Virus record (IMG/VR): IMGVR_UViG_3300046536_000256 | Span: 124,001 to 188,000 of that record | DNA: 64,000 nucleotides | Direction: 5' to 3' (one strand) | In this document: positions 14,775 through 60,585 of the stretch, piece by piece | How positions within the stretch are numbered: the first letter of the stretch is position 1 | Layout: the number at the start of each line of letters is the position of its first letter | Translations under genes and position numbers: made by a program | Notes under the pieces: model-generated | The model's database searches: none | Told to the model about the DNA's origin: nothing | The model's input: only the letters and a program-made list of their open reading frames with translations

Positions 14775-16853
14775 TTAATGTTCGTCGGAGACCAGGCGGG
14801 TAGTCTTAGAGTTCATAATGAACAGACCCAAGGTTTCCAGAATGGCGTACACCGACTTCAGGTTTTGGGAGATCAGCAGACGGGTGTCCACAATGGGCAT
14901 GATCTCTTTCGGAATCCCGCCCATTGCAGTGATCATGTCCACTGGAATGTAAACAGACGTCAAGTTACTGCGCGCGCTGATGAACTCTTCGAGCTTGGCC
15001 ACCAGTGCGTTTTCGCGGTGTGCGTCGAAGAAGTGCTTGATCTTGGTCTTGTTGCTCAGTGCCAAGTTGACCTTGTACGCTTTATAAGGCAGAACCGGTG
15101 CTCTACCGTATTTGTCGGAGAAGACTTTCTCCCACATCTCGTGGTAGTAGTAGATCGACGAGTCGGGTGTCGTGTAGGACTCTTGTTCCTTGATACCGTT
15201 CTTCGTCAACCAACCCCAGCCGCCTTCCTCGATGTCCTTGATCAGATCACGCTCAATGTTCCCCACTTCATGCAACACAGTCGCTGCATCCAGCTGAGAA
15301 CGTCCGTAGAGCGCATCCAAGATCTTCCGCATGAGTTTGGTGGTGAAGTCCCGCACCAGCAAGGCAATCTTCACGCCGCGTAAGTGGACACCTTTCAGTT
15401 CCAAGTCGGCATGGTCGTTGAGGATACCCTCCACCATAAGCTGCAATGCGAAGTAGTGCTTCGACATCGAAGTCGTTACATACGACCCAAACAGGTATTC
15501 GTTCTTCATGTTCAGGCGGTGCAGGTACTTCTTCGCCACGTTCATGTTCTTGCTGAGACGCGCATGCTGGTCTACGGCAATCGAACGGATGAAGTACGTC
15601 AGTACCCCGTTGAACTTCAGCCCGGTGTCGGCATCACTGGCGTAATCGTCAATGATCAAGTCAACGCTATAAATCGAGGAGTCAGTGTCGGAAGTCAATA
15701 CAGACTCACGCACCATCTCTTTTACATCGAACAAGCCAGTCGGCGGAATCTTCGACTTGAGGAACGCCCGAATAAACCGATCCCACTTCACTTCCAAACC
15801 GATGTGGTATTGGTTGAGGTGGTTGACCTGCAACGGGGTGGCTTTCTTACCCAGCTTGGTAATACAAAGGATCTTGTAGTCGCCGTTGGCTGGTTTAGGG
15901 AAGTCCGCTGCATCAGCACCTTCTGGAACCTCAGGGATCACACACCATTCAGCGAAGTACTGTTTCATCAACGCCGGGTTAGTGACGTAAAGTCCACGCA
16001 AGTCCATCGAGCACAACAGGATCGTCAATTCCAGCGGGTCCAAGTCCGCCAAGAACATTTCAATAGCCCGCAGGTTCGACGGGCTGTTCCAGTAGTACGA
16101 CGTGCAACGGATCACCATGTCCATGACTTGCGGGACAGTGGCGTACGTCATGTTGTATTCGTTGATCACCGCTTGGATCAGGTCACGGTCTGCATACCGC
16201 AATTGAGCCAGGAAGTACTCGATCGTTTTGTTGTACGTCAGCAGCAGACGGTTACCGGTGATCAGCCGTTCGTTGGTCAGGTTGGCCGTCGAGGTGACTG
16301 CGCGACAGGTACTGGTCAGCGAGGTGTGGCCCGACTTGTTGAACAACGGTGTACCCGAAGACGACATACCGCCCGACTGGGCGTTGTTGAAGATCTTCAG
16401 GGCGTTCTGGATTTCGTTGAACGCTTTCCAGGCTTCGGAGCCTTTCGGTACTTCGCCGCGTTTGCCTTTATACAGGCGACGGAACTCAATGAAGATCTCC
16501 GTACCCGAGGCGTTAACCGATTGCTCTTCCATCGTGTTCTTGTAAGCAACGAACGACGGAGACAAGTGCCAGTTGTTGTCTTCTACGGTTTGGAAGAACT
16601 CACGGGCTGGTTGGACAACTGCTTCGCGGTCGCCATACTTGTTCTTCTGGAAGACTTTGAACTTGGCTTCTTTAAAGCCATTCTCATTCGGAACAAACAC
16701 ATCCTTGATCAACATCAGGATGTGGTCATAATCGTACTTATAAACAAGCGCCAGATACATCGCCGCTTGTTCATGATAATGCCTGACCACGTTACGGTCG
16801 GAAGTGTAATCAACTTCAACAAAAGGTGAAAGGTGGAGAGCTTGAACGCCCAT
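14775..16853 (-). CDS. Family B DNA polymerase, polymerase-domain half of the split phiKZ-type enzyme (gp50-like)
   Basis: Motif B-like LKIFNNAQSG, motif C SDTDS, KHYF and LKGV; no exonuclease domain apparent. Confidence 0.88.
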   Translation of the reverse strand: MGVQALHLSPFVEVDYTSDRNVVRHYHEQAAMYLALVYKYDYDHILMLIKDVFVPNENGFKEAKFKVFQKNKYGDREAVVQPAREFFQTVEDNNWHLSPSFVAYKNTMEEQSVNASGTEIFIEFRRLYKGKRGEVPKGSEAWKAFNEIQNALKIFNNAQSGGMSSSGTPLFNKSGHTSLTSTCRAVTSTANLTNERLITGNRLLLTYNKTIEYFLAQLRYADRDLIQAVINEYNMTYATVPQVMDMVIRCTSYYWNSPSNLRAIEMFLADLDPLELTILLCSMDLRGLYVTNPALMKQYFAEWCVIPEVPEGADAADFPKPANGDYKILCITKLGKKATPLQVNHLNQYHIGLEVKWDRFIRAFLKSKIPPTGLFDVKEMVRESVLTSDTDSSIYSVDLIIDDYASDADTGLKFNGVLTYFIRSIAVDQHARLSKNMNVAKKYLHRLNMKNEYLFGSYVTTSMSKHYFALQLMVEGILNDHADLELKGVHLRGVKIALLVRDFTTKLMRKILDALYGRSQLDAATVLHEVGNIERDLIKDIEEGGWGWLTKNGIKEQESYTTPDSSIYYYHEMWEKVFSDKYGRAPVLPYKAYKVNLALSNKTKIKHFFDAHRENALVAKLEEFISARSNLTSVYIPVDMITAMGGIPKEIMPIVDTRLLISQNLKSVYAILETLGLFIMNSKTTRLVSDEH

Positions 16854-40296: not shown

Positions 40297-40734
40297 TTAG
40301 GTCCGTTTAGGGTCTCTACGGTCTTCAGTGAACAACACCCCGCGAATGCACGTAAGCGCGTAGTTGTTCTTCAGCACCACCTGCCTGAATACTTCCAGGT
40401 CTTTTGAGTGGGACTTATTTTTGCCTTCAGTCGGGTTAGCCCGCATGATAAAGCGATAAACTTGTTGGTCAGTGTACCAGCCTGGGAAGACGATCTCCCA
40501 CCCATCTGCTTTGCGCAGTATGTTGGGATACTCCAGACTCCAATCCCTGGTAATTCTGACACAACCGGCGTAGATCCCCAACGTGTAGGTGAAGACCATG
40601 CCGTTAGAAGTCCTTTCGACGAGGTAAGAGAACCCTCGACTTTCCATAACCCGTTGGATGATCAGAATGGTTAGCACACCGTAGATAATCACGAGCGCCA
40701 TGTTCATTGCGATATCGTACGTGGTATTGGACAT
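40297..40734 (-). CDS. Hypothetical membrane-anchored protein
   Basis: 145 aa, AGGAGG SD, N-terminal hydrophobic helix MALVIIYGVLTILII. Confidence 0.72.
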   Translation of the reverse strand: MSNTTYDIAMNMALVIIYGVLTILIIQRVMESRGFSYLVERTSNGMVFTYTLGIYAGCVRITRDWSLEYPNILRKADGWEIVFPGWYTDQQVYRFIMRANPTEGKNKSHSKDLEVFRQVVLKNNYALTCIRGVLFTEDRRDPKRT

Positions 40735-41548: not shown

Positions 41549-41998
41549 TTAATCCACAACGGTCATATTTTCGAACAGTTGGTAATCGTCAAACTTCGAC
41601 CGGAGTGACTTTGGGTCACAGGTTTCGTAAGACGTTTCAACGCCGCCCTGCATGATTTGAAAGGAACCAGACTTGGTTCCTTGCTTGTCAGTGTAAGTAA
41701 CGTTGTAGAACTTTTCCCCGTCCGTAACATAAAGCTCACGATTGAGGATGCCTTCTTCACGCGACATCTGTGCAGAGGTGCCTAAGTTGGTGCCACGCTT
41801 CATGATGGTCAACTCGGGCATGTCGATGTTCAGCCCGTACGACAGGATGAAGACATCGGTTGTTGGGTTATGTTCGACCAACACGTGTTTCCCGCTAGGC
41901 AGGTCGCAGGTGAAAATCACTTCATTGCTACCAGCTTGTGCTTGAACACTACCCAGCATCAACGACACCAGTACGAACAGGGCTGTTACATACTTCAT
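41549..41998 (-). CDS. Exported/periplasmic protein
   Basis: Sec signal peptide MKYVTALFVLVSLMLGSVQAQA, two Cys; ATGA-coupled to the upstream gene. Confidence 0.8.
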   Translation of the reverse strand: MKYVTALFVLVSLMLGSVQAQAGSNEVIFTCDLPSGKHVLVEHNPTTDVFILSYGLNIDMPELTIMKRGTNLGTSAQMSREEGILNRELYVTDGEKFYNVTYTDKQGTKSGSFQIMQGGVETSYETCDPKSLRSKFDDYQLFENMTVVD

Positions 41999-52003: not shown

Positions 52004-53554
52004 TTATTTCCCGAGGGAGTGACGAACGATCAGCTTGATCAGAGCCAGGTGCAGACGCTCACGCTTGGCGGCGGTGTCTTCTTGCGTTTCAACCGAAACG
52101 TAGGTGGCTTCCACAATGTCAGCCGCCAGGTTGCAGTTAACCGCACGCAAGAAAGCGGGAACCAGACCGCCAGCCATCAAGGCTTGCAAGACCACGTTGT
52201 CGTGACCCACTTCGACGTCGATGGGACCACCGCCACCTTGACCTGCCGCAGCCAGAGCTGTCGATACAGCGTAGTACGCCTTCTCGTATTCCAAGCCGAT
52301 CTTGGCGGTGAACCACTCTTCCACCATGAACTTGCCGTCGCACAGGCTACGGACACGGTCATTCAGTTTCGGAGTTTCCAGCAGGAACTTCAGCGAACGA
52401 GCACGAGCAGCCTGGATGAACAAGGTTTTCGCCTTGGTACCCAGAGTCTGGTCGATCGACTTGTAGTAAGCACTCGCCCATTGCTTCACTACTTCCGGAG
52501 AAGCCAGTGTAGCGGCTGGGTTCAAGTCGGTCTTGTTGAACTTGGCGTAAGTAATCGCCACCAACCACTCGTTAAAGCTGATACCGTTTTGCTCCAGTGT
52601 CTCCAGCGCTTGAGCGGTGTAGAAGATCTGCACGCTGCCGCTGATGAACTTGGCGCCTTCGTAGTCCTTGGACGGGTGATCCGCCATGCGCAGAGGCTCG
52701 ATCTCACCGATGGCCACAACGCGGCTACGGTAGGCCTTCGCCACTTGCTTCAGGCTGATCAGGTAACGGGTCATACCGTTCCACAGCAGGTTAACGAACT
52801 CGCGGTAGTCAGCGAGCGAACCCGACGCCAACCACTTCACCGGGCTTTCGTCGGTAACCATTTTGGTCAGCACGACATACATCTTGAGCAGCTTGTTGAT
52901 TTCCAAGCTCTGGATGACGGAGAAGTTGAACACGTTGTTCTTGTTGGAGAACATGCGACTCAGCTCGTAGACGTCGGTTACCGTGTTGGCGGCGCGCGAC
53001 AGGTCGTACTCGTCGTTAGACAAGATCTCGACCACGTCCGGGTGAGAAGTGTTGATGTAGGTCGCGATCTCTTCCGCGCTGGCGTAGTTAAACGACAGAC
53101 GGCTCAGCACGTCCAACGAAACGTTGGTGAAGTCCAGGGCGCTGTTCTTCACTTCGGTCGGGTAGATCTGCGAGTCGAAGAACGGATCGTCAACGTTGAC
53201 GTAGCTGTACGACAAGCGGCTGAAGCACAGGTCCTGCAAGCGGTCTGAGGTGTAGAGAATGCTCAGCTCGCTGGCCAAGGCCTTAGCAAAAGGCACACCG
53301 TAGTCCTTGATCATGTCAAAGCCACCACGAATCACGGAAGCCAGTTTGTCGCTGGTGGCCTCCATGACCGGGGTGTGTGCGGTGGTTTCGCCGGTGACCT
53401 GAGGGATCTCAGTGCGGAACGCTTCGGTGTACGCGGCAGAGCCATAGCTCTGTTCGTTCAAACCGACGATCAGATCCTTAACACGGATCGGGGTGTCGGA
53501 GTTGTGAGCGACCGCGATGGATTCGGCAAGGGAAAGGCTAGAAGAACGAATCAT
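52004..53554 (-). CDS. Conserved protein (phiKZ gp177 position)
   Basis: 516 aa, strong codon bias. Confidence 0.8.
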   Translation of the reverse strand: MIRSSSLSLAESIAVAHNSDTPIRVKDLIVGLNEQSYGSAAYTEAFRTEIPQVTGETTAHTPVMEATSDKLASVIRGGFDMIKDYGVPFAKALASELSILYTSDRLQDLCFSRLSYSYVNVDDPFFDSQIYPTEVKNSALDFTNVSLDVLSRLSFNYASAEEIATYINTSHPDVVEILSNDEYDLSRAANTVTDVYELSRMFSNKNNVFNFSVIQSLEINKLLKMYVVLTKMVTDESPVKWLASGSLADYREFVNLLWNGMTRYLISLKQVAKAYRSRVVAIGEIEPLRMADHPSKDYEGAKFISGSVQIFYTAQALETLEQNGISFNEWLVAITYAKFNKTDLNPAATLASPEVVKQWASAYYKSIDQTLGTKAKTLFIQAARARSLKFLLETPKLNDRVRSLCDGKFMVEEWFTAKIGLEYEKAYYAVSTALAAAGQGGGGPIDVEVGHDNVVLQALMAGGLVPAFLRAVNCNLAADIVEATYVSVETQEDTAAKRERLHLALIKLIVRHSLGK

Positions 53555-53724
53555 GCTTTATCCCCTGTCACAACAGCATTAATAGCTTTGCTGATGGCTT
53601 CGTCTTGAATGGTCTGTTCCAATGGAGCGATGAACTCCAGGCCGACCTTGTTGATAGTGCTCTTCACGAGTTCCACCGTGTTGGCGATAGACACCGTGTC
53701 TTGAATGAAAGTTTGCTGATTCAT
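53551..53724 (-). CDS. Small hypothetical protein (57 aa)
   Basis: MNQQTFIQDTVSIANTVELVK...VVTGDKA; its TGA overlaps the ATG of the next gene (ATGA). Confidence 0.72.
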   Translation of the reverse strand: MNQQTFIQDTVSIANTVELVKSTINKVGLEFIAPLEQTIQDEAISKAINAVVTGDKA

Positions 53725-53754: not shown

Positions 53755-54639
53755 TTAAGCGGCGATGACACGGTTAACAGTGTCCATGCCCTGGTAATAT
53801 ACGTCGTACAGACGAGAGTTGATCTCACCCACGGTGATCTGACCGTCTTTGTCGTAGTCGAAACCACAGTTCTGACGATAGCCGGTAGTCTCGACATCTT
53901 TGCGGAAGATAACCGTGTCCGCTGTCTTACCGACGGCTGCCGGATAGAAGATGGTGAGATAGAAGTCTTCCAGTTGGGAGAAGACCTTACCGCGCTTTGC
54001 CCACAGGTCGAAGTAGGCGAAGACCCACTTGAGCTGTTCGACCTGTGGCAAGACCCGCAATGCGGCTGTGCTGGTGTTGAGATCGCCGGCGGCCATGTCG
54101 CCGAACTGGATCAGACCGAAGTACTTGGCACCTGCGCCGTTCTGAATAGTCGGGCTGAATGTACCACCCGTCTCGAAGCACATGCACGACATCAACCAGT
54201 CGACAGCAGCATCTGGCCAGCCGCGCTGTTTACAACCAGCAATGACCGCGTCCAGAAACTCCTTCGACACCTTGGTGGACCAAGCAGCCTTATAAAGAGG
54301 CAAGCGGTTCTGTTGACGATAGGACTGGCACACTTGCTGAATTGCCGCAAGAGTGCCTGCCCCGAAGACACCGTCTACTTTACCGGTGTACAAACCAGCA
54401 GCCTTCAACAGGTCCTGGAATTTCACAACAGCTTGGACCATTGCGTCACCAGGGATGGTGGAAGCCGGGATGCTAGGCAACACATTCCCGGTTTGTTGAC
54501 GATAGAACGCCGATACCAAAGAGGTAGCCGCGGTCATGCTTCCTGGACCCACTTGACCATCAATTGCGCCAGTGTAAACCCGGGTCTCTTTCATCAGCAC
54601 TTGCAAGCTGCGCAACCCGTTGAAGTTTCTGTAGTTCAT
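53755..54639 (-). CDS. Modular endolysin: peptidoglycan-binding repeats plus a lysozyme/transglycosylase-like domain (EL188-like architecture)
   Basis: Two PGBD motifs (YTGAIDGQVGPGS, YTGKVDGVFGAGT), catalytic-type CFETGGTFSP and GLIQF. Start ATG 54639 with GAGGT SD; no signal peptide. Confidence 0.88.
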   Translation of the reverse strand: MNYRNFNGLRSLQVLMKETRVYTGAIDGQVGPGSMTAATSLVSAFYRQQTGNVLPSIPASTIPGDAMVQAVVKFQDLLKAAGLYTGKVDGVFGAGTLAAIQQVCQSYRQQNRLPLYKAAWSTKVSKEFLDAVIAGCKQRGWPDAAVDWLMSCMCFETGGTFSPTIQNGAGAKYFGLIQFGDMAAGDLNTSTAALRVLPQVEQLKWVFAYFDLWAKRGKVFSQLEDFYLTIFYPAAVGKTADTVIFRKDVETTGYRQNCGFDYDKDGQITVGEINSRLYDVYYQGMDTVNRVIAA

Positions 54640-54640
54640 T

Positions 54641-57600
54641 TTACTTACCTCGATAAACAGCGACGGCCAATTTGGTGAATGCAATGGTGAGTTCATTACT
54701 AACCAGTTTGTTCCGGAAGCTCAACACCATTCGGTTGAACATACCTTTCAAACTGGTCTTGATCAGAACCTCGCGACCATCTTCAGTCATCAGGGGTCTG
54801 TGCATGATCCGACCCACGGTGCCTTTCATTTGGTTCGCGATGACGTATTTGTCAGCGTTTGTACTTGGATCCATGGATTCAACCAAGATGGTAATGAACG
54901 CTTTACCCGGCGACAGAATCGGCTTGTTAACGTTCAAACTGTTAGACACAGCACCCTTGGTAACATCAGAACCTTCGATCTCGGCTTTCTTCTTGCGGGC
55001 TTTGTCTTGAGCGTTGATGAACTTCCTCACGCTGTCCGACATTTCTTCAAGCGGTGAGTTGTACACCACCTCGATTTTGATGACCTTACCGTGATGCTTG
55101 GAACGCACTTGTTTGATACCCAGTTTGTTCACTTCGGCAATGAGCACGGCTTCAGCAACATCCGCCACCAAGTGGGCGTCTTCAACGTTGCATAAAATCG
55201 AGTCATAGTCAACAGAATCACCCACTTTGACTTCCAAGCTGATGTTCTGAACCACATCGATCGCAAAGCGCATCCCCTTGATGTACGGAGTCACACCTTC
55301 CATTGCCAGTTCTTTCGCAATAGCAATGGAGTCTTCGTACACGTCTTGGTCTTCCACCATGGCAATCCGCACCATGCGACCCGCTTTCCAAGCCACTTGA
55401 CCCGGGCAGAAAGGATCACGAGCAAACCACTGCTCATCCCAACCCAAGACATCGCCTTTCTGGAAAGTATCGCCAACCTTCAGGTCAGTGATCCGGGTAT
55501 GACGATGGTACTCACCCGCAGCCTCACCGATTTCCAACCCCAGAGGGTAGACGTCAGTGGTCCCGTCCTTATAGGTCACTCTGAGAGCGTCCTCAGCGAG
55601 CTCTGTGACCTTCCCTGCATCAGCAGCAACCTTGCTGTACAGATCAGACGTACGGTGCGCTACGACGTTCTCGTAGCCTGTACGGAGGATGTTCGGCGTG
55701 TAGTTCATTGCACTGACCGCCTGACTCGCTTGAGTCGAGGTAAAGGTCGACCGTTTAGGGTCATCGTGCCCAACGCCGTACTGAAGGTTACCCGTCACCG
55801 ATACCAGCCCGGAATTGGACCCCTTGTCATCCTTAGCGATGTTACCCCGGAAGTCTTTAATGCGAGGGTCAGAAGAAAGGTAGGTTACGAAGCCTACTTT
55901 ACCGCTGTCCTTGTTCGCCTCCGAGATGACCCCCTTGTACGTGTCAAGTTGTTGCCGGGCGCGCTTGACCATGGTGATCTCGCTACGACCGCCGACCCCA
56001 CCAAAGGTAACCTCTTCCTGATCCTTCAACTGGTGAATCGGGTTCACCTCTTCCACCAAGTTCACCGAGGTATCGGTAATGATGTTGAGGATGACCGCTT
56101 CAGGATTGATGTCAATGGAGTGCTTGCGCTCTTTGCCTTTGTTCCGGTACATACGGATGGCTTTAACCATCTCCCGGTACACATGGCCCGCAAACCGCTC
56201 ATACCCAACAATGCGTTGTTCGTCCAGCTCAACCTCATGACGAGAGAAGTCCGTTTCCAGCAACTTCACCGCGTCAATCAGCAGGTAGTGGAACGAAGTC
56301 GCGTAGCCCAACCGCGCCAGCTCTTCCTTGGTCACCGGATCGATAAACAGGTCAAACAGGTTCTTCATTTCCTTGAACTGCTGCGGCTTAACCTTTGGAT
56401 CGCCCATCAACGGAACCCAGATACCTTTCTCGTTGAGATCGGTACGACTGAAGTTGCTGATGTTGTTCAGCTTCGGCATGCCACCAAAGATCAGACTGGC
56501 CAACTTCTCACGACGGTTAAAGATCAGGTACTCGTCGTTGAACGCGATCGCGTACTCATCCTCACTGAGCTTAGGACGGGTGCCCATCGGAACAGAGCGG
56601 GTAGTAGCCCCAGTAACCTCAATCAGTTTGTCAATACCGAAGTAGTAACACAGCACAACGCCCATAGGGAAGTAGTAACCGCTGATGTTGATCACGGCAT
56701 ACTCAATCGGCGCTTTCGCCGTAGAGACACCCATTAGGCCTTCCACGGTGTTGATCTCGGTGTCCCCTTGGAAGAGGTTACCGAAACTGTCCACCCACAG
56801 CGGCTGCTTGTCCTTCACCCCTACCAGGAAAGCATCTTTCTTGGTGTACTTCTTGAACTCAGGGTGTTGAGTCAGCAGATCGTCAATACGGAAGTCGAGG
56901 GTAATGTCCCCAACCGTGATGAACACAAACTTCTTGGCCAGAATGGAGTAAATGCGTGGCGACGTGTATTCAGCACTGTAACCTGAACCTTGGCTGTACG
57001 TCAGGAAGGCAGGACCACCTTCAGGCTTAATACCCCGAATACGAATCTGCTTCACCAACCACAGGCCGTAATCGTCCACCACCTTCTGACTACGCAGCAC
57101 CATGAGCTTGCGGTCATAGTAGCTGGTCAAGGCGACCTTAAAGGCGTTGATCTTGCGGAGTGGCAGTTCCATGCGTTGCAGCTGCATGTGTTGCTTCACG
57201 CCGTCCACGGTAAAAGTCCCGTCCTTCTGCACTTTAGGCAAACGGATTTGGTGGGTGCTCTGCGTACCGTCCACAGGGTGCAACTGGATACGCAGGACGT
57301 CGTACGAACCTTCAACCCCGGAGATCACTTCCTGCTTGTAGTCCGCCACAGCAACACCGGCGTTCTGAATGCCCACAACCATCTTGGCGATGTCTTTGTG
57401 CAGGAAGCGTTGAGCGTACTCTTGTTTCAACACGGCGGAACGACTGCGGAGCATGCTGTCGTCAAGAACGGTGATGAAGTTACCCTCGATCTTACCGTCC
57501 AACGAATCGATCTCCTCAGGAGAGATCTGCATGAACTCCCCCAACGTCTGACCGTTGCCCATTTCGATGTGCTGGTACGCAGACCCCTTACGCATGAAGA

Positions 57601-58966
57601 AGTTCTGTTCAGAGACCGTCAAGGAGCCATCACGAGCCCGTTCTTCCAGAGCCGCTTTAATACCAGCCTCAGGAGTAGGGAATGCATCTTTCTTGGTAGA
57701 GATTTCCACCGTGGTGGTTTCTACTTCCAGCAGAGCATCGTCTACGTGACTTGTCCAATCCCCAGCAGCTTCATCAATTGGATGTTCTGCCTCATCTCCT
57801 TGCCCTTCCACCAGTGGACTGTTATTTCCCTGGTGACTCCCGAAAACATCAAGGATGCTACGATCAACAGAATGATCATCCACAGGCGCATGCGAGCCAG
57901 TAGGCGTGGCTGCTTTTCCGTCACCGGATGCTCGTCCTTGCCCTTGCGCAGCTCCCTTCTCTCCTTGATCCACTGAAGCGTCGTTTTCCGCTCCTGGGGT
58001 TGGGGTTCCTGTTCCATCTTTCTTCTCCTCGTCAGAAATCTCCTTCTCGCTGACCGACCCACGCACTAGGTTCATCAACGCCAAGTAGAACCGCTTGGTA
58101 ACGTTGATGCGTTTAGGCGAAACCCCTTCAGGTTTTTGTGCGCCTTCCTTGACGTGTGTGTCCAGTTCTTCGAGCCAGGACTTGATCGTTTTGATGTTGA
58201 TGATCAAAGCCTTGCTGTTGGCGGTAAAGATAAAGTGAAGGTCGTCTTCCGCCTGAGGGGTTAACTTACCAAACAAACTGTACTCATACTCGCCTTGCAG
58301 GAACGCCAACAAATCTAGCAGCCAGTAGCACCCTTCGGCTTTAGTTACCCGAAGAGACTGGTTACTAGGAACCGGAAGACCCTCTTTAAAGCTCCCAATA
58401 TACTTTGCATAGTCGACCATCAAATCTTTGTAAGAAGGAATGTTAATAGGCAGTTCAAACCGCAGGAACTGCTTACGTGTTTGCGCGCGCTCAGCCTCGG
58501 TGTTCATGCCTTCAACCAGCATGTTCAACCGGTTGTAATGAATCTCGAAGTTGACAAAGGTAGCAGCACGCTGCGCCCAGGTCTTATCGGCAATGCCGTA
58601 GTTCTTGACGATCAGCACATCGTTGCGGCGATAAACCGTATTGATGTCTTTGGTCCAATTGTAGTTGTAGTGACTGGCGCGGTAAGACTGAATCGCCTTC
58701 TTGACATCAAACGCCAACACACGGCCATGCCCCATCACCGGAGTGAAACGAGGCACGAACTCAATGAACACATCTTCAGGGAAGTTCGAGATGAAAGCTT
58801 CCGACACAGAAGGACCAAACTCTGTAGCCAGCTTCGGCACGAAATGCACCAAGGCTTGCTTCGGCATGACAATCTCGCTCACGCCGATAAAGTTAGGCTC
58901 CATGAGCTCCTGTTTCTTCCGCTGTACAAACAGTTTAAAGAACTCACTGTACGTAAGAAGCCGCAT
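54641..58966 (-). CDS. Virion RNA polymerase beta subunit (phiKZ gp178-like)
   Basis: 1441 aa; GGVGGRS, SEANKDSGKVG, YEDSI, ADKYVIANQMKGT and FNRMV beta-subunit motifs. Confidence 0.92.
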   Translation of the reverse strand: MRLLTYSEFFKLFVQRKKQELMEPNFIGVSEIVMPKQALVHFVPKLATEFGPSVSEAFISNFPEDVFIEFVPRFTPVMGHGRVLAFDVKKAIQSYRASHYNYNWTKDINTVYRRNDVLIVKNYGIADKTWAQRAATFVNFEIHYNRLNMLVEGMNTEAERAQTRKQFLRFELPINIPSYKDLMVDYAKYIGSFKEGLPVPSNQSLRVTKAEGCYWLLDLLAFLQGEYEYSLFGKLTPQAEDDLHFIFTANSKALIINIKTIKSWLEELDTHVKEGAQKPEGVSPKRINVTKRFYLALMNLVRGSVSEKEISDEEKKDGTGTPTPGAENDASVDQGEKGAAQGQGRASGDGKAATPTGSHAPVDDHSVDRSILDVFGSHQGNNSPLVEGQGDEAEHPIDEAAGDWTSHVDDALLEVETTTVEISTKKDAFPTPEAGIKAALEERARDGSLTVSEQNFFMRKGSAYQHIEMGNGQTLGEFMQISPEEIDSLDGKIEGNFITVLDDSMLRSRSAVLKQEYAQRFLHKDIAKMVVGIQNAGVAVADYKQEVISGVEGSYDVLRIQLHPVDGTQSTHQIRLPKVQKDGTFTVDGVKQHMQLQRMELPLRKINAFKVALTSYYDRKLMVLRSQKVVDDYGLWLVKQIRIRGIKPEGGPAFLTYSQGSGYSAEYTSPRIYSILAKKFVFITVGDITLDFRIDDLLTQHPEFKKYTKKDAFLVGVKDKQPLWVDSFGNLFQGDTEINTVEGLMGVSTAKAPIEYAVINISGYYFPMGVVLCYYFGIDKLIEVTGATTRSVPMGTRPKLSEDEYAIAFNDEYLIFNRREKLASLIFGGMPKLNNISNFSRTDLNEKGIWVPLMGDPKVKPQQFKEMKNLFDLFIDPVTKEELARLGYATSFHYLLIDAVKLLETDFSRHEVELDEQRIVGYERFAGHVYREMVKAIRMYRNKGKERKHSIDINPEAVILNIITDTSVNLVEEVNPIHQLKDQEEVTFGGVGGRSEITMVKRARQQLDTYKGVISEANKDSGKVGFVTYLSSDPRIKDFRGNIAKDDKGSNSGLVSVTGNLQYGVGHDDPKRSTFTSTQASQAVSAMNYTPNILRTGYENVVAHRTSDLYSKVAADAGKVTELAEDALRVTYKDGTTDVYPLGLEIGEAAGEYHRHTRITDLKVGDTFQKGDVLGWDEQWFARDPFCPGQVAWKAGRMVRIAMVEDQDVYEDSIAIAKELAMEGVTPYIKGMRFAIDVVQNISLEVKVGDSVDYDSILCNVEDAHLVADVAEAVLIAEVNKLGIKQVRSKHHGKVIKIEVVYNSPLEEMSDSVRKFINAQDKARKKKAEIEGSDVTKGAVSNSLNVNKPILSPGKAFITILVESMDPSTNADKYVIANQMKGTVGRIMHRPLMTEDGREVLIKTSLKGMFNRMVLSFRNKLVSNELTIAFTKLAVAVYRGK
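57742..58017 (-). CDS. Putative overprinted 91-aa single-pass membrane protein nested in the vRNAP beta gene (+1 frame)
   Basis: GAGGAG SD 7 nt before the ATG, TM segment LWMIILLIVASLMFSGVT, and distorted host-frame codon usage over this interval. Confidence 0.6.
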   Translation of the reverse strand: MEQEPQPQERKTTLQWIKERRELRKGKDEHPVTEKQPRLLARMRLWMIILLIVASLMFSGVTREITVHWWKGKEMRQNIQLMKLLGIGQVT

Positions 58967-58968
58967 TG

Positions 58969-60585
58969 TTACTCCTCAAGACCGCTCGTAGCAGCCTTCA
59001 ACATAAACAGAATCGGTTCGTTGACAGGGTCATAAAGGAAACGACCACTGCCACTGATGTAGTACTCGCGCTTACCGAACAAAGCATTGACTTCAGTCTT
59101 GCTGTCCTCGGCGTTCACGCTGTTGCTGTTCAACTGGTCACCGTCGTGGTCGGAGTCATAGCCCGCTTCACGAGAAGGGTCAACCGACATGGCATCGAAG
59201 TAATCGGGGGTTTCTGTCCGATGTGGGTAACGGGTACAGGTTTCCAGCACTTCCCAATCGGGAGTACGGATGGTCCGAGTCTTTGCGCCTGTGATGGTCA
59301 CTAGGTTCACCCGCGCCGGCACGATGGAACCGATACCAATGATCGGGTAACGTGTCTGTTGAGTGATCTGATCCATGACGGTTTGTTGGCACGACAGGTA
59401 GAACAGCTCCATGTACGTGATGGGTTTGACGAACTTACGATCCTTACCTTCAGGCAGGTCGTTGATGTCATAAAGCACACAGACATCTTCGCCATCATCA
59501 TAAACAAGGGCTAGGTAGTGTTTCTCTACCACGATCTCTTTGTTGCGCAAGTGCACGTTGGAGAAGCCGTTGAAGAGTTTGTTCAACCCGGTAAAGGTTG
59601 ACCATTTCTCCACCACACTCGGGGCCACTTCGACGTACTCGTATTCGAGGGTCTTGGTGTTCACCAACTTCACTGTCTGCGAACCTGGGGTAAAGATGTT
59701 CTGCAAGTACTTGCTCAGGAGAGCATGCACACAGACGTACTGGTTGTTCAGCAGCGCCTGATACAGACCGATGTCCGTCGAGTTAGGGTTAACTCCGTTA
59801 GGCTTGAACAAGTCAGCCCGGGAGACCTTACGCGCTGTAATAACGTTACGAGTCCCCGACACCACACCACGCGTTGACAGCCGCTTCTGAAACAAGCCAC
59901 CTTTACCTTCAGTCAAACCGAAGAGGTACTGGTCGATGTCGTTGAATGCACTTTGCAAGCCCCAACGCACGTTGTCGTACAGTGGGTTCTCGGCATCCCG
60001 TTGACTTCCTAGGCTAATGACCCGGGTCTTGAAGATCAACTTACGGTACAGTTCGGTGATCTCGGGTTCAGTCGGAGTGCCGTTAGCTTGGAACTGAATG
60101 TCCCGTAAACCAGCCGGAATCACCAAGACCTTATTGCTCACCGAGATGTCGCGGAATTGGGTAACCAATTTCACCCGCTGCTTACGTTTATAGGAATCGG
60201 TGCTGGCCGGGACGATTTCGTAGAAGTGACGCATAAAGAAAGCGAAACCGGTTTCACCGTCCAGCAGGTTGGATTTTATGAAATCCTTCGCCTCTGGATC
60301 CCATACCGCGTATTCCGTTCCTTTGAGAATACTGAGGTACAAAGATTTTATTTGTGTCAGTGCTTTGAAGTAGGTTGGGTTGAAGAGCCCGAGCTTTGTG
60401 TCAATGTACGCTTCAGTCTTATCGCGCTCTTTACTACCCAGCTTACCGAAGATCTCTAAGGAGTACAGACCCTCGTCGTTCAGGTTCTGGGTCATCCCTT
60501 CAAAGGCGTCCGTAGACGTGACTTCTTTGAAGACACCCGGCACGATAGACTTGGGGTCTAGCAGTTTAAGGTTTGTGGGTTTCAT
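58969..60585 (-). CDS. Virion RNA polymerase beta' subunit with catalytic aspartates (phiKZ gp180-like)
   Basis: GLYSLEIFG, VIPAGLRD, GTRNVIT, TRYP and DSDHDGD (DxDGD). Confidence 0.92.
   Translation of the reverse strand: MKPTNLKLLDPKSIVPGVFKEVTSTDAFEGMTQNLNDEGLYSLEIFGKLGSKERDKTEAYIDTKLGLFNPTYFKALTQIKSLYLSILKGTEYAVWDPEAKDFIKSNLLDGETGFAFFMRHFYEIVPASTDSYKRKQRVKLVTQFRDISVSNKVLVIPAGLRDIQFQANGTPTEPEITELYRKLIFKTRVISLGSQRDAENPLYDNVRWGLQSAFNDIDQYLFGLTEGKGGLFQKRLSTRGVVSGTRNVITARKVSRADLFKPNGVNPNSTDIGLYQALLNNQYVCVHALLSKYLQNIFTPGSQTVKLVNTKTLEYEYVEVAPSVVEKWSTFTGLNKLFNGFSNVHLRNKEIVVEKHYLALVYDDGEDVCVLYDINDLPEGKDRKFVKPITYMELFYLSCQQTVMDQITQQTRYPIIGIGSIVPARVNLVTITGAKTRTIRTPDWEVLETCTRYPHRTETPDYFDAMSVDPSREAGYDSDHDGDQLNSNSVNAEDSKTEVNALFGKREYYISGSGRFLYDPVNEPILFMLKAATSGLEE

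Follow-up and report, generated by a model that had tools for sequence, protein, structure and literature searches.

An overprinted gene for a single-helix membrane protein within the virion RNA polymerase beta gene of a clade of giant phages

The DNA examined was a 64,000-nucleotide window from the IMG/VR virus record IMGVR_UViG_3300046536_000256 (positions 124,001 to 188,000 of that record), and all coordinates below refer to this window. A string of minus-strand genes near one end of the window includes an RNA polymerase subunit gene (58969..60585, 538 aa), the equivalent of RisingSun gp229. It tightly abuts a 1441-aa gene (54641..58966) for a virion-type multisubunit RNA polymerase (RNAP) beta subunit, a phiKZ gp178 / EL / OBP_278 homologue that is 59.5% identical to the EL protein and 57.5% identical to that of RisingSun and matches PHROG 3148 (E = 0). 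A search of the PDB with the N-terminal 622 aa of the RNAP found no solved relative. An endolysin gene (53755..54639) starts 2 nt after the RNAP stop codon. Its product carries a PG_binding_1 domain and an EL gp188/OBPgp279-type catalytic domain and has no hydrophobic N-terminus. This is followed by a conserved 57-aa gene (53551..53724), a homologue of RisingSun gp232 and HHBS8_1 CDS0217 (PHROG 17945). The 57-aa product was considered as a holin, but it has no transmembrane (TM) segment and is not one.

Within the RNAP beta gene, a 91-codon open reading frame (ORF) lies on the same strand in the +1 frame (57742..58017, ATG at 58017..58015, TAG stop at 57744..57742). It is preceded by the Shine-Dalgarno (SD) sequence GAGGAG at 58030..58025 with a 7-nt spacer. 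The predicted product is a small bitopic membrane protein consisting of a charged, basic N-terminal domain (residues 1-44) ending RLLARMR, a TM helix LWMIILLIVASLMFSGVT (residues 45-62, 57832..57885) and a C-terminal amphipathic helix of 29 aa (residues 63-91). The ORF lies over the low-complexity, poorly conserved G/A/T/D/E-rich linker of the RNAP (residues about 317-409, 57740..58018). An earlier note, made from the sequence alone, had described this ORF, its SD, its coincidence with the linker and an unusual codon usage in the RNAP frame. Each of these descriptive claims was checked against the sequence, and the observation is confirmed.

The codon anomaly is real and extreme. GC3 in the RNAP frame is 0.35 over the 93 overlapped codons compared to 0.65 in the rest of the gene, and the lowest 92-codon GC3 window of the whole gene starts at codon 314. 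GGA accounts for 9 of 15 Gly codons in the linker but 0 of 91 elsewhere (Fisher p = 1.5e-9). When the interval is read in the ORF frame, the periodicity is that of a normal gene of this genome (GC1/2/3 = 0.49/0.36/0.77). Over the TM helix, T at ORF codon position 2 corresponds to T-ending codons in the RNAP frame. One possible explanation is that there is no second gene and that the open frame, the hydrophobic stretch and the odd codon usage are by-products of a low-complexity, G/A/D/E-rich linker under relaxed codon selection. ORF length alone does not argue against this, since the 54.6 kb of coding sequence in the window contains 7 stop-free runs of at least 106 codons at offset +1 and 6 at offset +2. 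Also, given the amino-acid composition of the linker, the +1 frame stays open in 2-80% of synonymous resamplings. The evidence beyond chance comes from the codon-usage footprint and, above all, from comparison with relatives.

Next, the RNAP beta genes of relatives were aligned, which the earlier note had put forward as a way to test its idea, naming stops in the +1 frame or loss of the SD or TM helix in close relatives as grounds for rejecting it. The +1 frame was open over the same alignment interval in all 26 relatives examined with at least about 37% whole-protein RNAP identity, while the +2 frame was full of stops. These relatives include the loci L002-L014 (our numbering of relatives), EL, RisingSun, OBP, pEt-SU, the Miami-like phage BUCTxx100, Aphrodite1, pTD1, ZPAH34, AH04, FishSpeaker, Sureiya, VP4B, PDCC-1 and IMG/VR contigs. 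The ORF was absent in 7 outgroups. Each of the 26 encodes a basic N-terminus, one TM helix and a conserved C-terminal helix, and the hydrophobicity of the TM helix is conserved in every lineage although the RNAP-frame residues over it vary freely (DDHSVDR, AAPNDSG or SANPGPR). The ATG and the TAG/TAA stop fall at fixed alignment columns. The ATG is preserved through changes in RNAP-frame amino acids ([D/N]-[G/E/V] = xAT Gxx), and the stop is always built on an RNAP-frame NTA codon. Most relatives have a GAGGA-type SD, and the anti-SD duplex energy falls in the top 10% of the gene background in 15 of 18 lineages (binomial p = 6e-13).

Substitutions between close relatives show that the wobble position has moved from RNAP codon position 3 to position 1, which is position 3 of the ORF. 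Between L002 and L003, differences at RNAP codon positions 1/2/3 are 24/9/5 in the overlap and 99/59/406 in the rest of the gene (Fisher p = 3e-12). Amino-acid identity between them is 92% for the ORF and 71% for the RNAP frame over the same bases. The pattern was replicated in 10 further pairs and recurs in independent clades: Aphrodite1/2 TSL-2019 and Aphrodite1/PDCC-1 (p = 2e-9 to 1.5e-11), pTD1/VP4B (p = 5e-13) and OBP/pEt-SU (p = 3e-6). In null models conditioned on the RNAP protein, the probability of an open +1 frame with a TM-grade helix was 0.06-23% per lineage, with a product of about 1e-27 over 16 lineages. Since the lineages are related, the multiplied probabilities overstate independence, and a codon-model estimate of selection for overlapping frames on a full phylogeny of all available Chimalliviridae RNAP beta genes, which would date the origin, was not made. 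Conversely, 1.6% or fewer of the synonymous resamplings that preserve the ORF protein leave the RNAP frame open in each of 18 lineages, yet it is open in all of them. The absence of a second gene cannot explain the conserved ATG, SD and stop, the conserved TM hydrophobicity, the substitution pattern or the higher amino-acid conservation in the +1 frame than in frame 0. We regard that explanation as effectively refuted.

Another possible explanation is that the +1 frame is reached by programmed +1 ribosomal frameshifting out of the RNAP frame, giving a membrane-anchored, truncated N-terminal RNAP fragment. The two frames are on the same strand in a +1 relationship and, in the window, the +1 frame is open for 16 codons upstream of the ATG. 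However, in several lineages (UViG84, UViG65, BUCTxx100, ZPAH34, Aphrodite1 and FishSpeaker) a +1-frame stop lies only 2-7 codons upstream of the conserved ATG, and the ATG and a correctly spaced SD are themselves conserved. A slippery site was not looked for, but we consider this explanation very unlikely.

Homologues of the product were then sought. No DNA-level homologue of the linker was found in GenBank phages, in which only the flanks matched at 65-70%. A tblastn search of phages with the 91-aa product gave only hits of E = 0.1-0.5, although these fall inside RNAP beta of pEt-SU and AH04. A word-indexed protein search returned one 60-aa fragment. An exhaustive HMM search of 1.84 billion representative proteins returned 6 hits between 60 and 90 aa long and no free-standing homologue; the two whose contigs were seen came from contigs of 309 and 706 bp. 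Gene callers pick this ORF on short metagenome contigs, but it is annotated in none of the GenBank records inspected. Searches of Pfam, PHROGs and NCBIfam with all members gave nothing. The ORF-family alignment was too divergent to seed a search for related loci, and the BUCTxx100 RNAP as query found no IMG/VR relative. An AF2 model contained only helices at moderate confidence (pLDDT 67), and no fold search was attempted.

Taken together, 57742..58017 is best explained as a genuine protein-coding gene created by overprinting, wholly within the disordered linker of the virion RNAP beta gene, and we hold this explanation with high confidence. The comparisons themselves demonstrate that selection maintains both reading frames and that constraint on the embedded frame dominates over the interval, whereas the mode of expression and the properties of the product are inferences or predictions and the function is inference alone. 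The ORF would be translated by internal initiation at its own SD and ATG on the late polycistronic mRNA that also carries the RNAP subunits and the endolysin. Translation was not measured, and literature searches found no Ribo-seq or mass spectrometry data of infected cells. The predicted product is an inner-membrane protein of about 85-105 aa, oriented N-in/C-out, with a basic helical cytoplasmic domain (motif W-L-K-E-R-x-E-L-R-K-G-K), one TM helix ending S-L-M-F-S and a periplasmic helix of about 30 aa (motif P-x-E-x-R-E-x-E-[IL]-[IL]).

The interpretation in the earlier note is only partly supported. Its core inference, a concealed gene for a single-pass membrane protein that leaves a footprint of selection on a second frame, is strongly supported, but its functional label of holin or lysis regulator remains a hypothesis. 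The most likely role is in lysis, either as a class-III-topology holin or as a partner or regulator of a separate holin. We are very confident in a real, selected membrane-protein gene, but a lysis role of any kind is only a possibility, less likely than not, and that it is the holin itself is a tentative suggestion. Members have features expected of a holin, being 75-106 aa long with one transmembrane domain (TMD; KD17 1.9-3.1) and an N-terminal net charge of +2 to +15. Position gives no clear answer: the ORF is in the same tightly packed, same-strand gene string as the endolysin, which lies immediately downstream of RNAP beta in every ORF-bearing relative checked, but it is 3.1 kb upstream of the endolysin and the spanins are elsewhere (EL gp110/111, OBP_139/140). 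Agricanviruses (Simmy50, Desertfox) also place a transglycosylase right after RNAP beta, and Simmy50, the one checked, lacks the ORF, so the synteny argument is weak. Neither PMF-sensitive lethality nor complementation of lambda S was assayed, and there are no expression or phenotype data of any kind.

The closest functional comparison is the experimentally proven 'class IIIb' holin gp142 of the related jumbo phage phiKZ (Manohar et al. 2026, Sci Rep, PMC12894885). Like gp142, the embedded gene encodes a small protein with a single TMD, predicted N-in/C-out with the larger domain in the cytoplasm. This topology rests on the positive-inside rule applied to 18 members, whose periplasmic tails are about 25-50 residues, compared to about 30 in gp142. 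However, hhalign with query A1 gave a probability of 0.3% against gp142 and 0.15% against a 6-member gp142 profile, so no homology was detected. gp142 is a free-standing gene in a compact cassette (spanins, holin, regulator, endolysin) and has an 80-aa cytoplasmic helical bundle, whereas the present gene is embedded in an RNAP gene, has a basic N-terminus of 30-45 aa and is untested. A tblastn search with gp142 found no hit in EL/OBP/RisingSun-type phages. Its homologues occur only in phiKZ/PA3/201phi2-1/Phabio/Noxifer-type phages, of which phiKZ and Phabio, the two checked, lack the embedded ORF.

The earlier note also stated that no other holin candidate was visible near the endolysin, and this is true only locally. 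A conserved protein with two TMDs and a charged C-terminus, a more conventional holin candidate, lies next to the spanin pair in EL (gp109, convergent to gp110/gp111), RisingSun (gp94, beside gp95/96) and OBP (OBP_138, beside OBP_139/140). This free-standing family is unrelated in sequence to the embedded gene and is conserved across the whole ORF-bearing clade. It could be the actual hole-former, in which case the embedded gene would be an antiholin, a lysis-timing regulator or a second holin-like component. Single-TMD N-in/C-out proteins with short periplasmic tails are known as holin regulators (T4 RI and lambda S107-type logic). We consider this explanation doubtful, since the gp109 family has no holin annotation or experimental data (PHROG 14084, unknown function) and is also present in Agricanvirus, where Simmy50, the one checked, lacks the ORF, so that the two do not strictly co-occur. 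Pattern scans of the window's own IMG/VR contig did not find the gp109-family gene, probably because of a limit of exact-pattern seeding, and the 233-kb contig was not scanned completely for gp109-family and spanin genes. The region at 16.9-18.7 kb of the window was considered as the equivalent of the gp108-111 (spanin) region and rejected, as the ORFs that had suggested it were on the wrong strand.

It is also possible, though unlikely in our view, that the gene is real but unrelated to lysis. It could encode a membrane protein for superinfection exclusion, for envelope or early-vesicle remodelling, or for virion or RNAP-packaging logistics, and its location would then reflect only where a permissive disordered linker was available for de novo gene birth. 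The lack of homology to any lysis protein, the weak synteny and the presence of the acidic linker in outgroups that lack the ORF are consistent with this, and overprinted genes typically arise in disordered regions whatever their function (Pavesi 2021, PMC8227390; Sabath et al. 2012, PMC3494269). On the other hand, the size, single TMD, charged termini, late-operon position and absence of a gp142-type holin fit a lysis protein at least as well. A more far-reaching possibility, also unlikely but not excluded, is that a whole clade of nucleus-forming-type jumbo phages (EL, OBP, RisingSun, Miami-like, Aphrodite/pTD1, and Aeromonas and Shewanella relatives) hides its holin or master lysis-timing protein in this linker. 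This would be a new holin family, born by overprinting, physically coupled to an essential structural-enzyme gene and translated from the same late mRNA as the endolysin, and it would explain why no holin has been annotated in these phages.

Small membrane-targeted proteins encoded out of frame inside, or overlapping, another phage gene and missed by standard gene calling include lambda Rz1 within Rz, phiX174 E within D and MS2 L overlapping coat/replicase. The +1 embedded geometry is identical to that of Rz1/Rz and E/D (see also phiKZ 141/141.1 in PMC12894885). In contrast to Rz1, the window product has no Cys, lipobox or N-terminal signal and is not an o-spanin. The TMD is central rather than N-terminal as in E, the host gene is a 4.3-kb RNAP subunit gene with no lysis role, and the genome is over 200 kb, where coding compression is not an obvious driver. 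As in the de novo overprinted viral genes catalogued previously (PMC8227390, PMC3494269), the new frame lies in a low-complexity, poorly conserved segment of an older gene, is restricted to one clade, has no homologues elsewhere and is accompanied by distorted codon usage in one frame. Here, however, the younger frame carries the stronger constraint and the genome-typical codon periodicity while the older RNAP frame looks off-frame, and most catalogued cases are in small RNA or ssDNA viruses rather than jumbo dsDNA phages.

Overlapping genes are assumed to be rare and unimportant in large dsDNA phages, and annotation pipelines forbid them. The embedded gene adds a new protein family to the conserved gene set of a large jumbo-phage clade and is a clean natural example of de novo gene birth inside a disordered linker. 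It is also a candidate for the missing lysis-timing component of EL/OBP-type phages, whose endolysins (EL188, OBPgp279) are widely used as enzybiotic scaffolds. In engineering, 'silent' recoding or linker edits in the virion RNAP beta gene would mutate a second gene. Lastly, we considered gene capture, in which a free-standing gene was swallowed by fusion of split RNAP genes. This scenario is disfavoured because an acidic linker of similar length is present in outgroups with an unsplit gene and no ORF.

An ORF of 91 codons was found on the minus strand, opening with an ATG at 58017 and ending with TAG at 57744..57742. It lies at offset +1 inside a 1441-codon ORF, 58966..54641, which is the virion-type RNA polymerase (RNAP) beta subunit of a jumbo phage (PHROG 3148), with 59.5% amino-acid identity to Pseudomonas phage EL and 57.5% to Erwinia phage RisingSun. 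GAGGAG lies 7 nt upstream of the ATG. The product has a charged 44-residue N-terminus, an 18-residue hydrophobic helix and a 29-residue tail, and the ORF covers the low-complexity linker of the RNAP, residues about 317-409. The next gene (54639..53755) is an EL gp188/OBPgp279-type endolysin with a PG-binding domain and no signal sequence. All of the descriptive statements made in the earlier note, which had proposed a hidden membrane-protein gene at this position, were found to be correct. Directly after the endolysin, at 53551-53724 on the minus strand, lies a 57-aa gene of unknown function that has no TM segment and is conserved in RisingSun (gp232) and EL-like phages (PHROG 17945); phiKZ has a similarly placed small gene (177.1) after gp178, even though its endolysin is elsewhere. 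In EL (locus L010) and several EL-like phages, as at locus L016 (5692-6150), the RNAP beta gene is split into two CDSs by an insert of about 400 bp, with an HNH endonuclease gene just upstream. In contrast, the gene is uninterrupted in the window phage (54641-58966) and in GXNNE2, suggesting an intron or homing-element polymorphism.

The length of the ORF is not evidence for a gene, since the 54.6 kb of coding sequence in the window contains seven +1 and six +2 stop-free runs of at least 106 codons. Given the amino-acid composition of the linker, the +1 frame stayed open in 67% of synonymous resamplings of the window gene. Very long antisense ORFs also run opposite the RNAP gene on the plus strand at 55346-56737 (463 aa) and 56990-57976 (328 aa); these were not tested for conservation and are probably by-products of the strong G/C-ending codon bias. 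The codon footprint of the embedded ORF, however, is real. RNAP-frame GC3 is 0.35 over the overlap against 0.65 elsewhere, and the lowest 92-codon GC3 window of the whole gene starts at codon 314. GGA accounts for 9 of 15 Gly codons in the linker and 0 of 91 outside it (p = 1.5e-9). Read in the ORF frame, the stretch has the normal coding periodicity of the genome (GC1/2/3 = 0.49/0.36/0.77).

Next, the ORF was compared across relatives, which was the test that the earlier note had asked for and which proved decisive. A search of the phage collection returned no DNA-level match to the linker. The window's own contig (UViG_3300046536_000256, 233 kb) and relatives at 88, 84, 65, 62, 59, 57 and 55% RNAP identity were obtained from IMG/VR, and deeper relatives were obtained from GenBank. 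In all 26 loci examined with at least about 37% whole-protein RNAP identity, the +1 frame is open across the same alignment interval: EL, RisingSun, BUCTxx100 (Miami-like), ZPAH34, Aphrodite1, USC-1, pTD1, VP4B, PDCC-1, 2 TSL-2019, OBP, pEt-SU, Sureiya, AH04, FishSpeaker and the IMG/VR contigs. In all of them, the ORF starts with ATG at the same column and stops at the same column, while the +2 frame is littered with stops. The ORF is absent from seven outgroups: Simmy50, KpHz_2, Goslar, SPLA5c, RSF1, Phabio and phiKZ gp178.

The products (75-106 aa) share one architecture, consisting of a basic N-terminus, with W-L-K-E-R-x-E-L-R-K-G-K in the EL/RisingSun group, one TM helix, often ending S-L-M-F-S or L-T-F-T-P, and a C-terminal P-x-E-x-R-E-x-E-[IL]-[IL]...K-x-G helix. 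Over the TM helix, the RNAP-frame residues are unconserved (DDHSVDR / AAPNDSG / SANPGPR / PRADRPA), while the +1 frame stays hydrophobic. The start and stop signals are conserved as well. The ATG survives RNAP-frame amino-acid changes ([D/N]-[G/E/V], always xAT Gxx), and the stop always rides on an NTA codon. A GAGGA-type SD precedes the ATG, and its anti-SD duplex energy is in the top decile of gene background in 15 of 18 lineages (binomial p = 6e-13). A frameshift fusion product is unlikely, because +1-frame stops lie 2-7 codons upstream of the conserved ATG in several lineages.

To examine selection, nucleotide differences between the window phage and its 88% relative were counted by RNAP codon position. 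Differences at positions 1/2/3 are 24/9/5 in the 92 overlapped codons and 99/59/406 in the other 1315 codons (Fisher p = 3e-12). The wobble position has moved to RNAP position 1, which is ORF position 3. ORF identity is 92%, against 71% for the RNAP frame over the same bases and about 90% for the rest of RNAP. The same shift was seen in independent clades: Aphrodite1 compared to 2 TSL-2019 and PDCC-1 (p = 2e-9 to 1.5e-11), pTD1 compared to VP4B (p = 5e-13), OBP compared to pEt-SU (p = 3e-6), and six deeper pairs (p = 2e-3 to 1e-5). ORF identity exceeds RNAP-frame identity in every pair.

Null models gave the same answer. The joint probability of an open +1 frame with a TM-grade helix, given the RNAP protein, is 0.06-23% per lineage. 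The product is about 1e-27 over 16 lineages, which is an overstatement because the lineages are related. Conversely, given the ORF protein, the RNAP frame would be open in at most 1.6% of resamplings in each of 18 lineages, yet it is open in all of them. Both frames are therefore maintained. This is a true dual-coding region, and the embedded frame carries the stronger constraint.

An acidic, low-complexity linker occupies the same position in outgroups that lack the ORF (phiKZ, Phabio, Goslar, Simmy50, and RSF1). The gene was thus most likely born de novo by overprinting in a pre-existing disordered linker, at the base of one clade. None of the GenBank records inspected annotates the ORF, and literature searches found no description of it. 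An exhaustive profile search of 1.84 billion representative proteins found only six hits, between 60 and 90 aa long, and no free-standing homologue. The two hits whose contigs were seen are on contigs of 309 and 706 bp, where the gene caller preferred this ORF. On such very short metagenome contigs (L042, which is ENA ERZ27315818 k141_511, 706 bp, and protein records P0001-P0006), the caller picks the embedded ORF rather than the truncated RNAP frame, which fits its genome-typical coding periodicity. These are the only database records of the family.

The product was then searched for clues to its function. No Pfam, PHROG or NCBIfam family matches it, and AF2 gives two helices at moderate confidence (pLDDT 67). 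The region flanking the TMD on the N-terminal side is consistently more basic than the C-terminal flank, which predicts an N-in/C-out orientation. This is the topology of phiKZ gp142, recently shown experimentally to be the phiKZ holin and proposed as "class IIIb" (PMC12894885). However, profile-profile comparison with gp142 shows no homology. Homologues of gp142 exist only in phiKZ/PA3/201phi2-1/Phabio/Noxifer-type phages, a distribution that appears complementary to that of the embedded ORF, although only phiKZ and Phabio were checked, both of which lack it. In every ORF-bearing relative checked, the endolysin follows RNAP beta directly, so the ORF and the endolysin share a late gene string. 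Agricanviruses show the same synteny, and Simmy50, the one checked, lacks the ORF.

The spanins of EL (gp110/111) and OBP (OBP_139/140) lie elsewhere (Kongari et al. 2018 supplement, PMC6139136). Next to the spanins sits a conserved 2-TMD protein with a charged C-terminus: EL gp109 (15515-15883 of locus L043), RisingSun gp94 (1429-1821 of locus L051) and OBP_138 (1186-1833 of locus L052). It always lies convergent to the overlapping spanin gene pair, after a RuvC-like gene, and belongs to PHROG 14084 ("unknown function"). Its homologue was not retrieved from the window's own contig. This protein is an unannotated candidate holin for EL/OBP/RisingSun-type jumbo phages, and a more conventional one than the embedded ORF product.

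Taken together, the interpretation in the earlier note, that a lysis-timing gene may be concealed within a polymerase gene, was partly supported. We are highly confident that the hidden overprinted membrane-protein gene is real. The maintenance of both frames by selection was shown, whereas the function of the gene is only inferred. A lysis role is the best single guess, but a tentative one. That the product is the holin itself is possible but doubtful, and a regulator or partner of a gp109-type holin and a membrane function outside lysis are both live alternatives.

Two other genes in the window, both on the minus strand, encode proteins that may be envelope-directed. A 145-aa protein (40297-40734) has an N-terminal TM anchor and no Pfam or PHROG match. 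A 149-aa protein (41549-41998), which was not searched against these families, has a cleavable-looking signal peptide (…SLMLGSVQAQA). Both may be accessory proteins.
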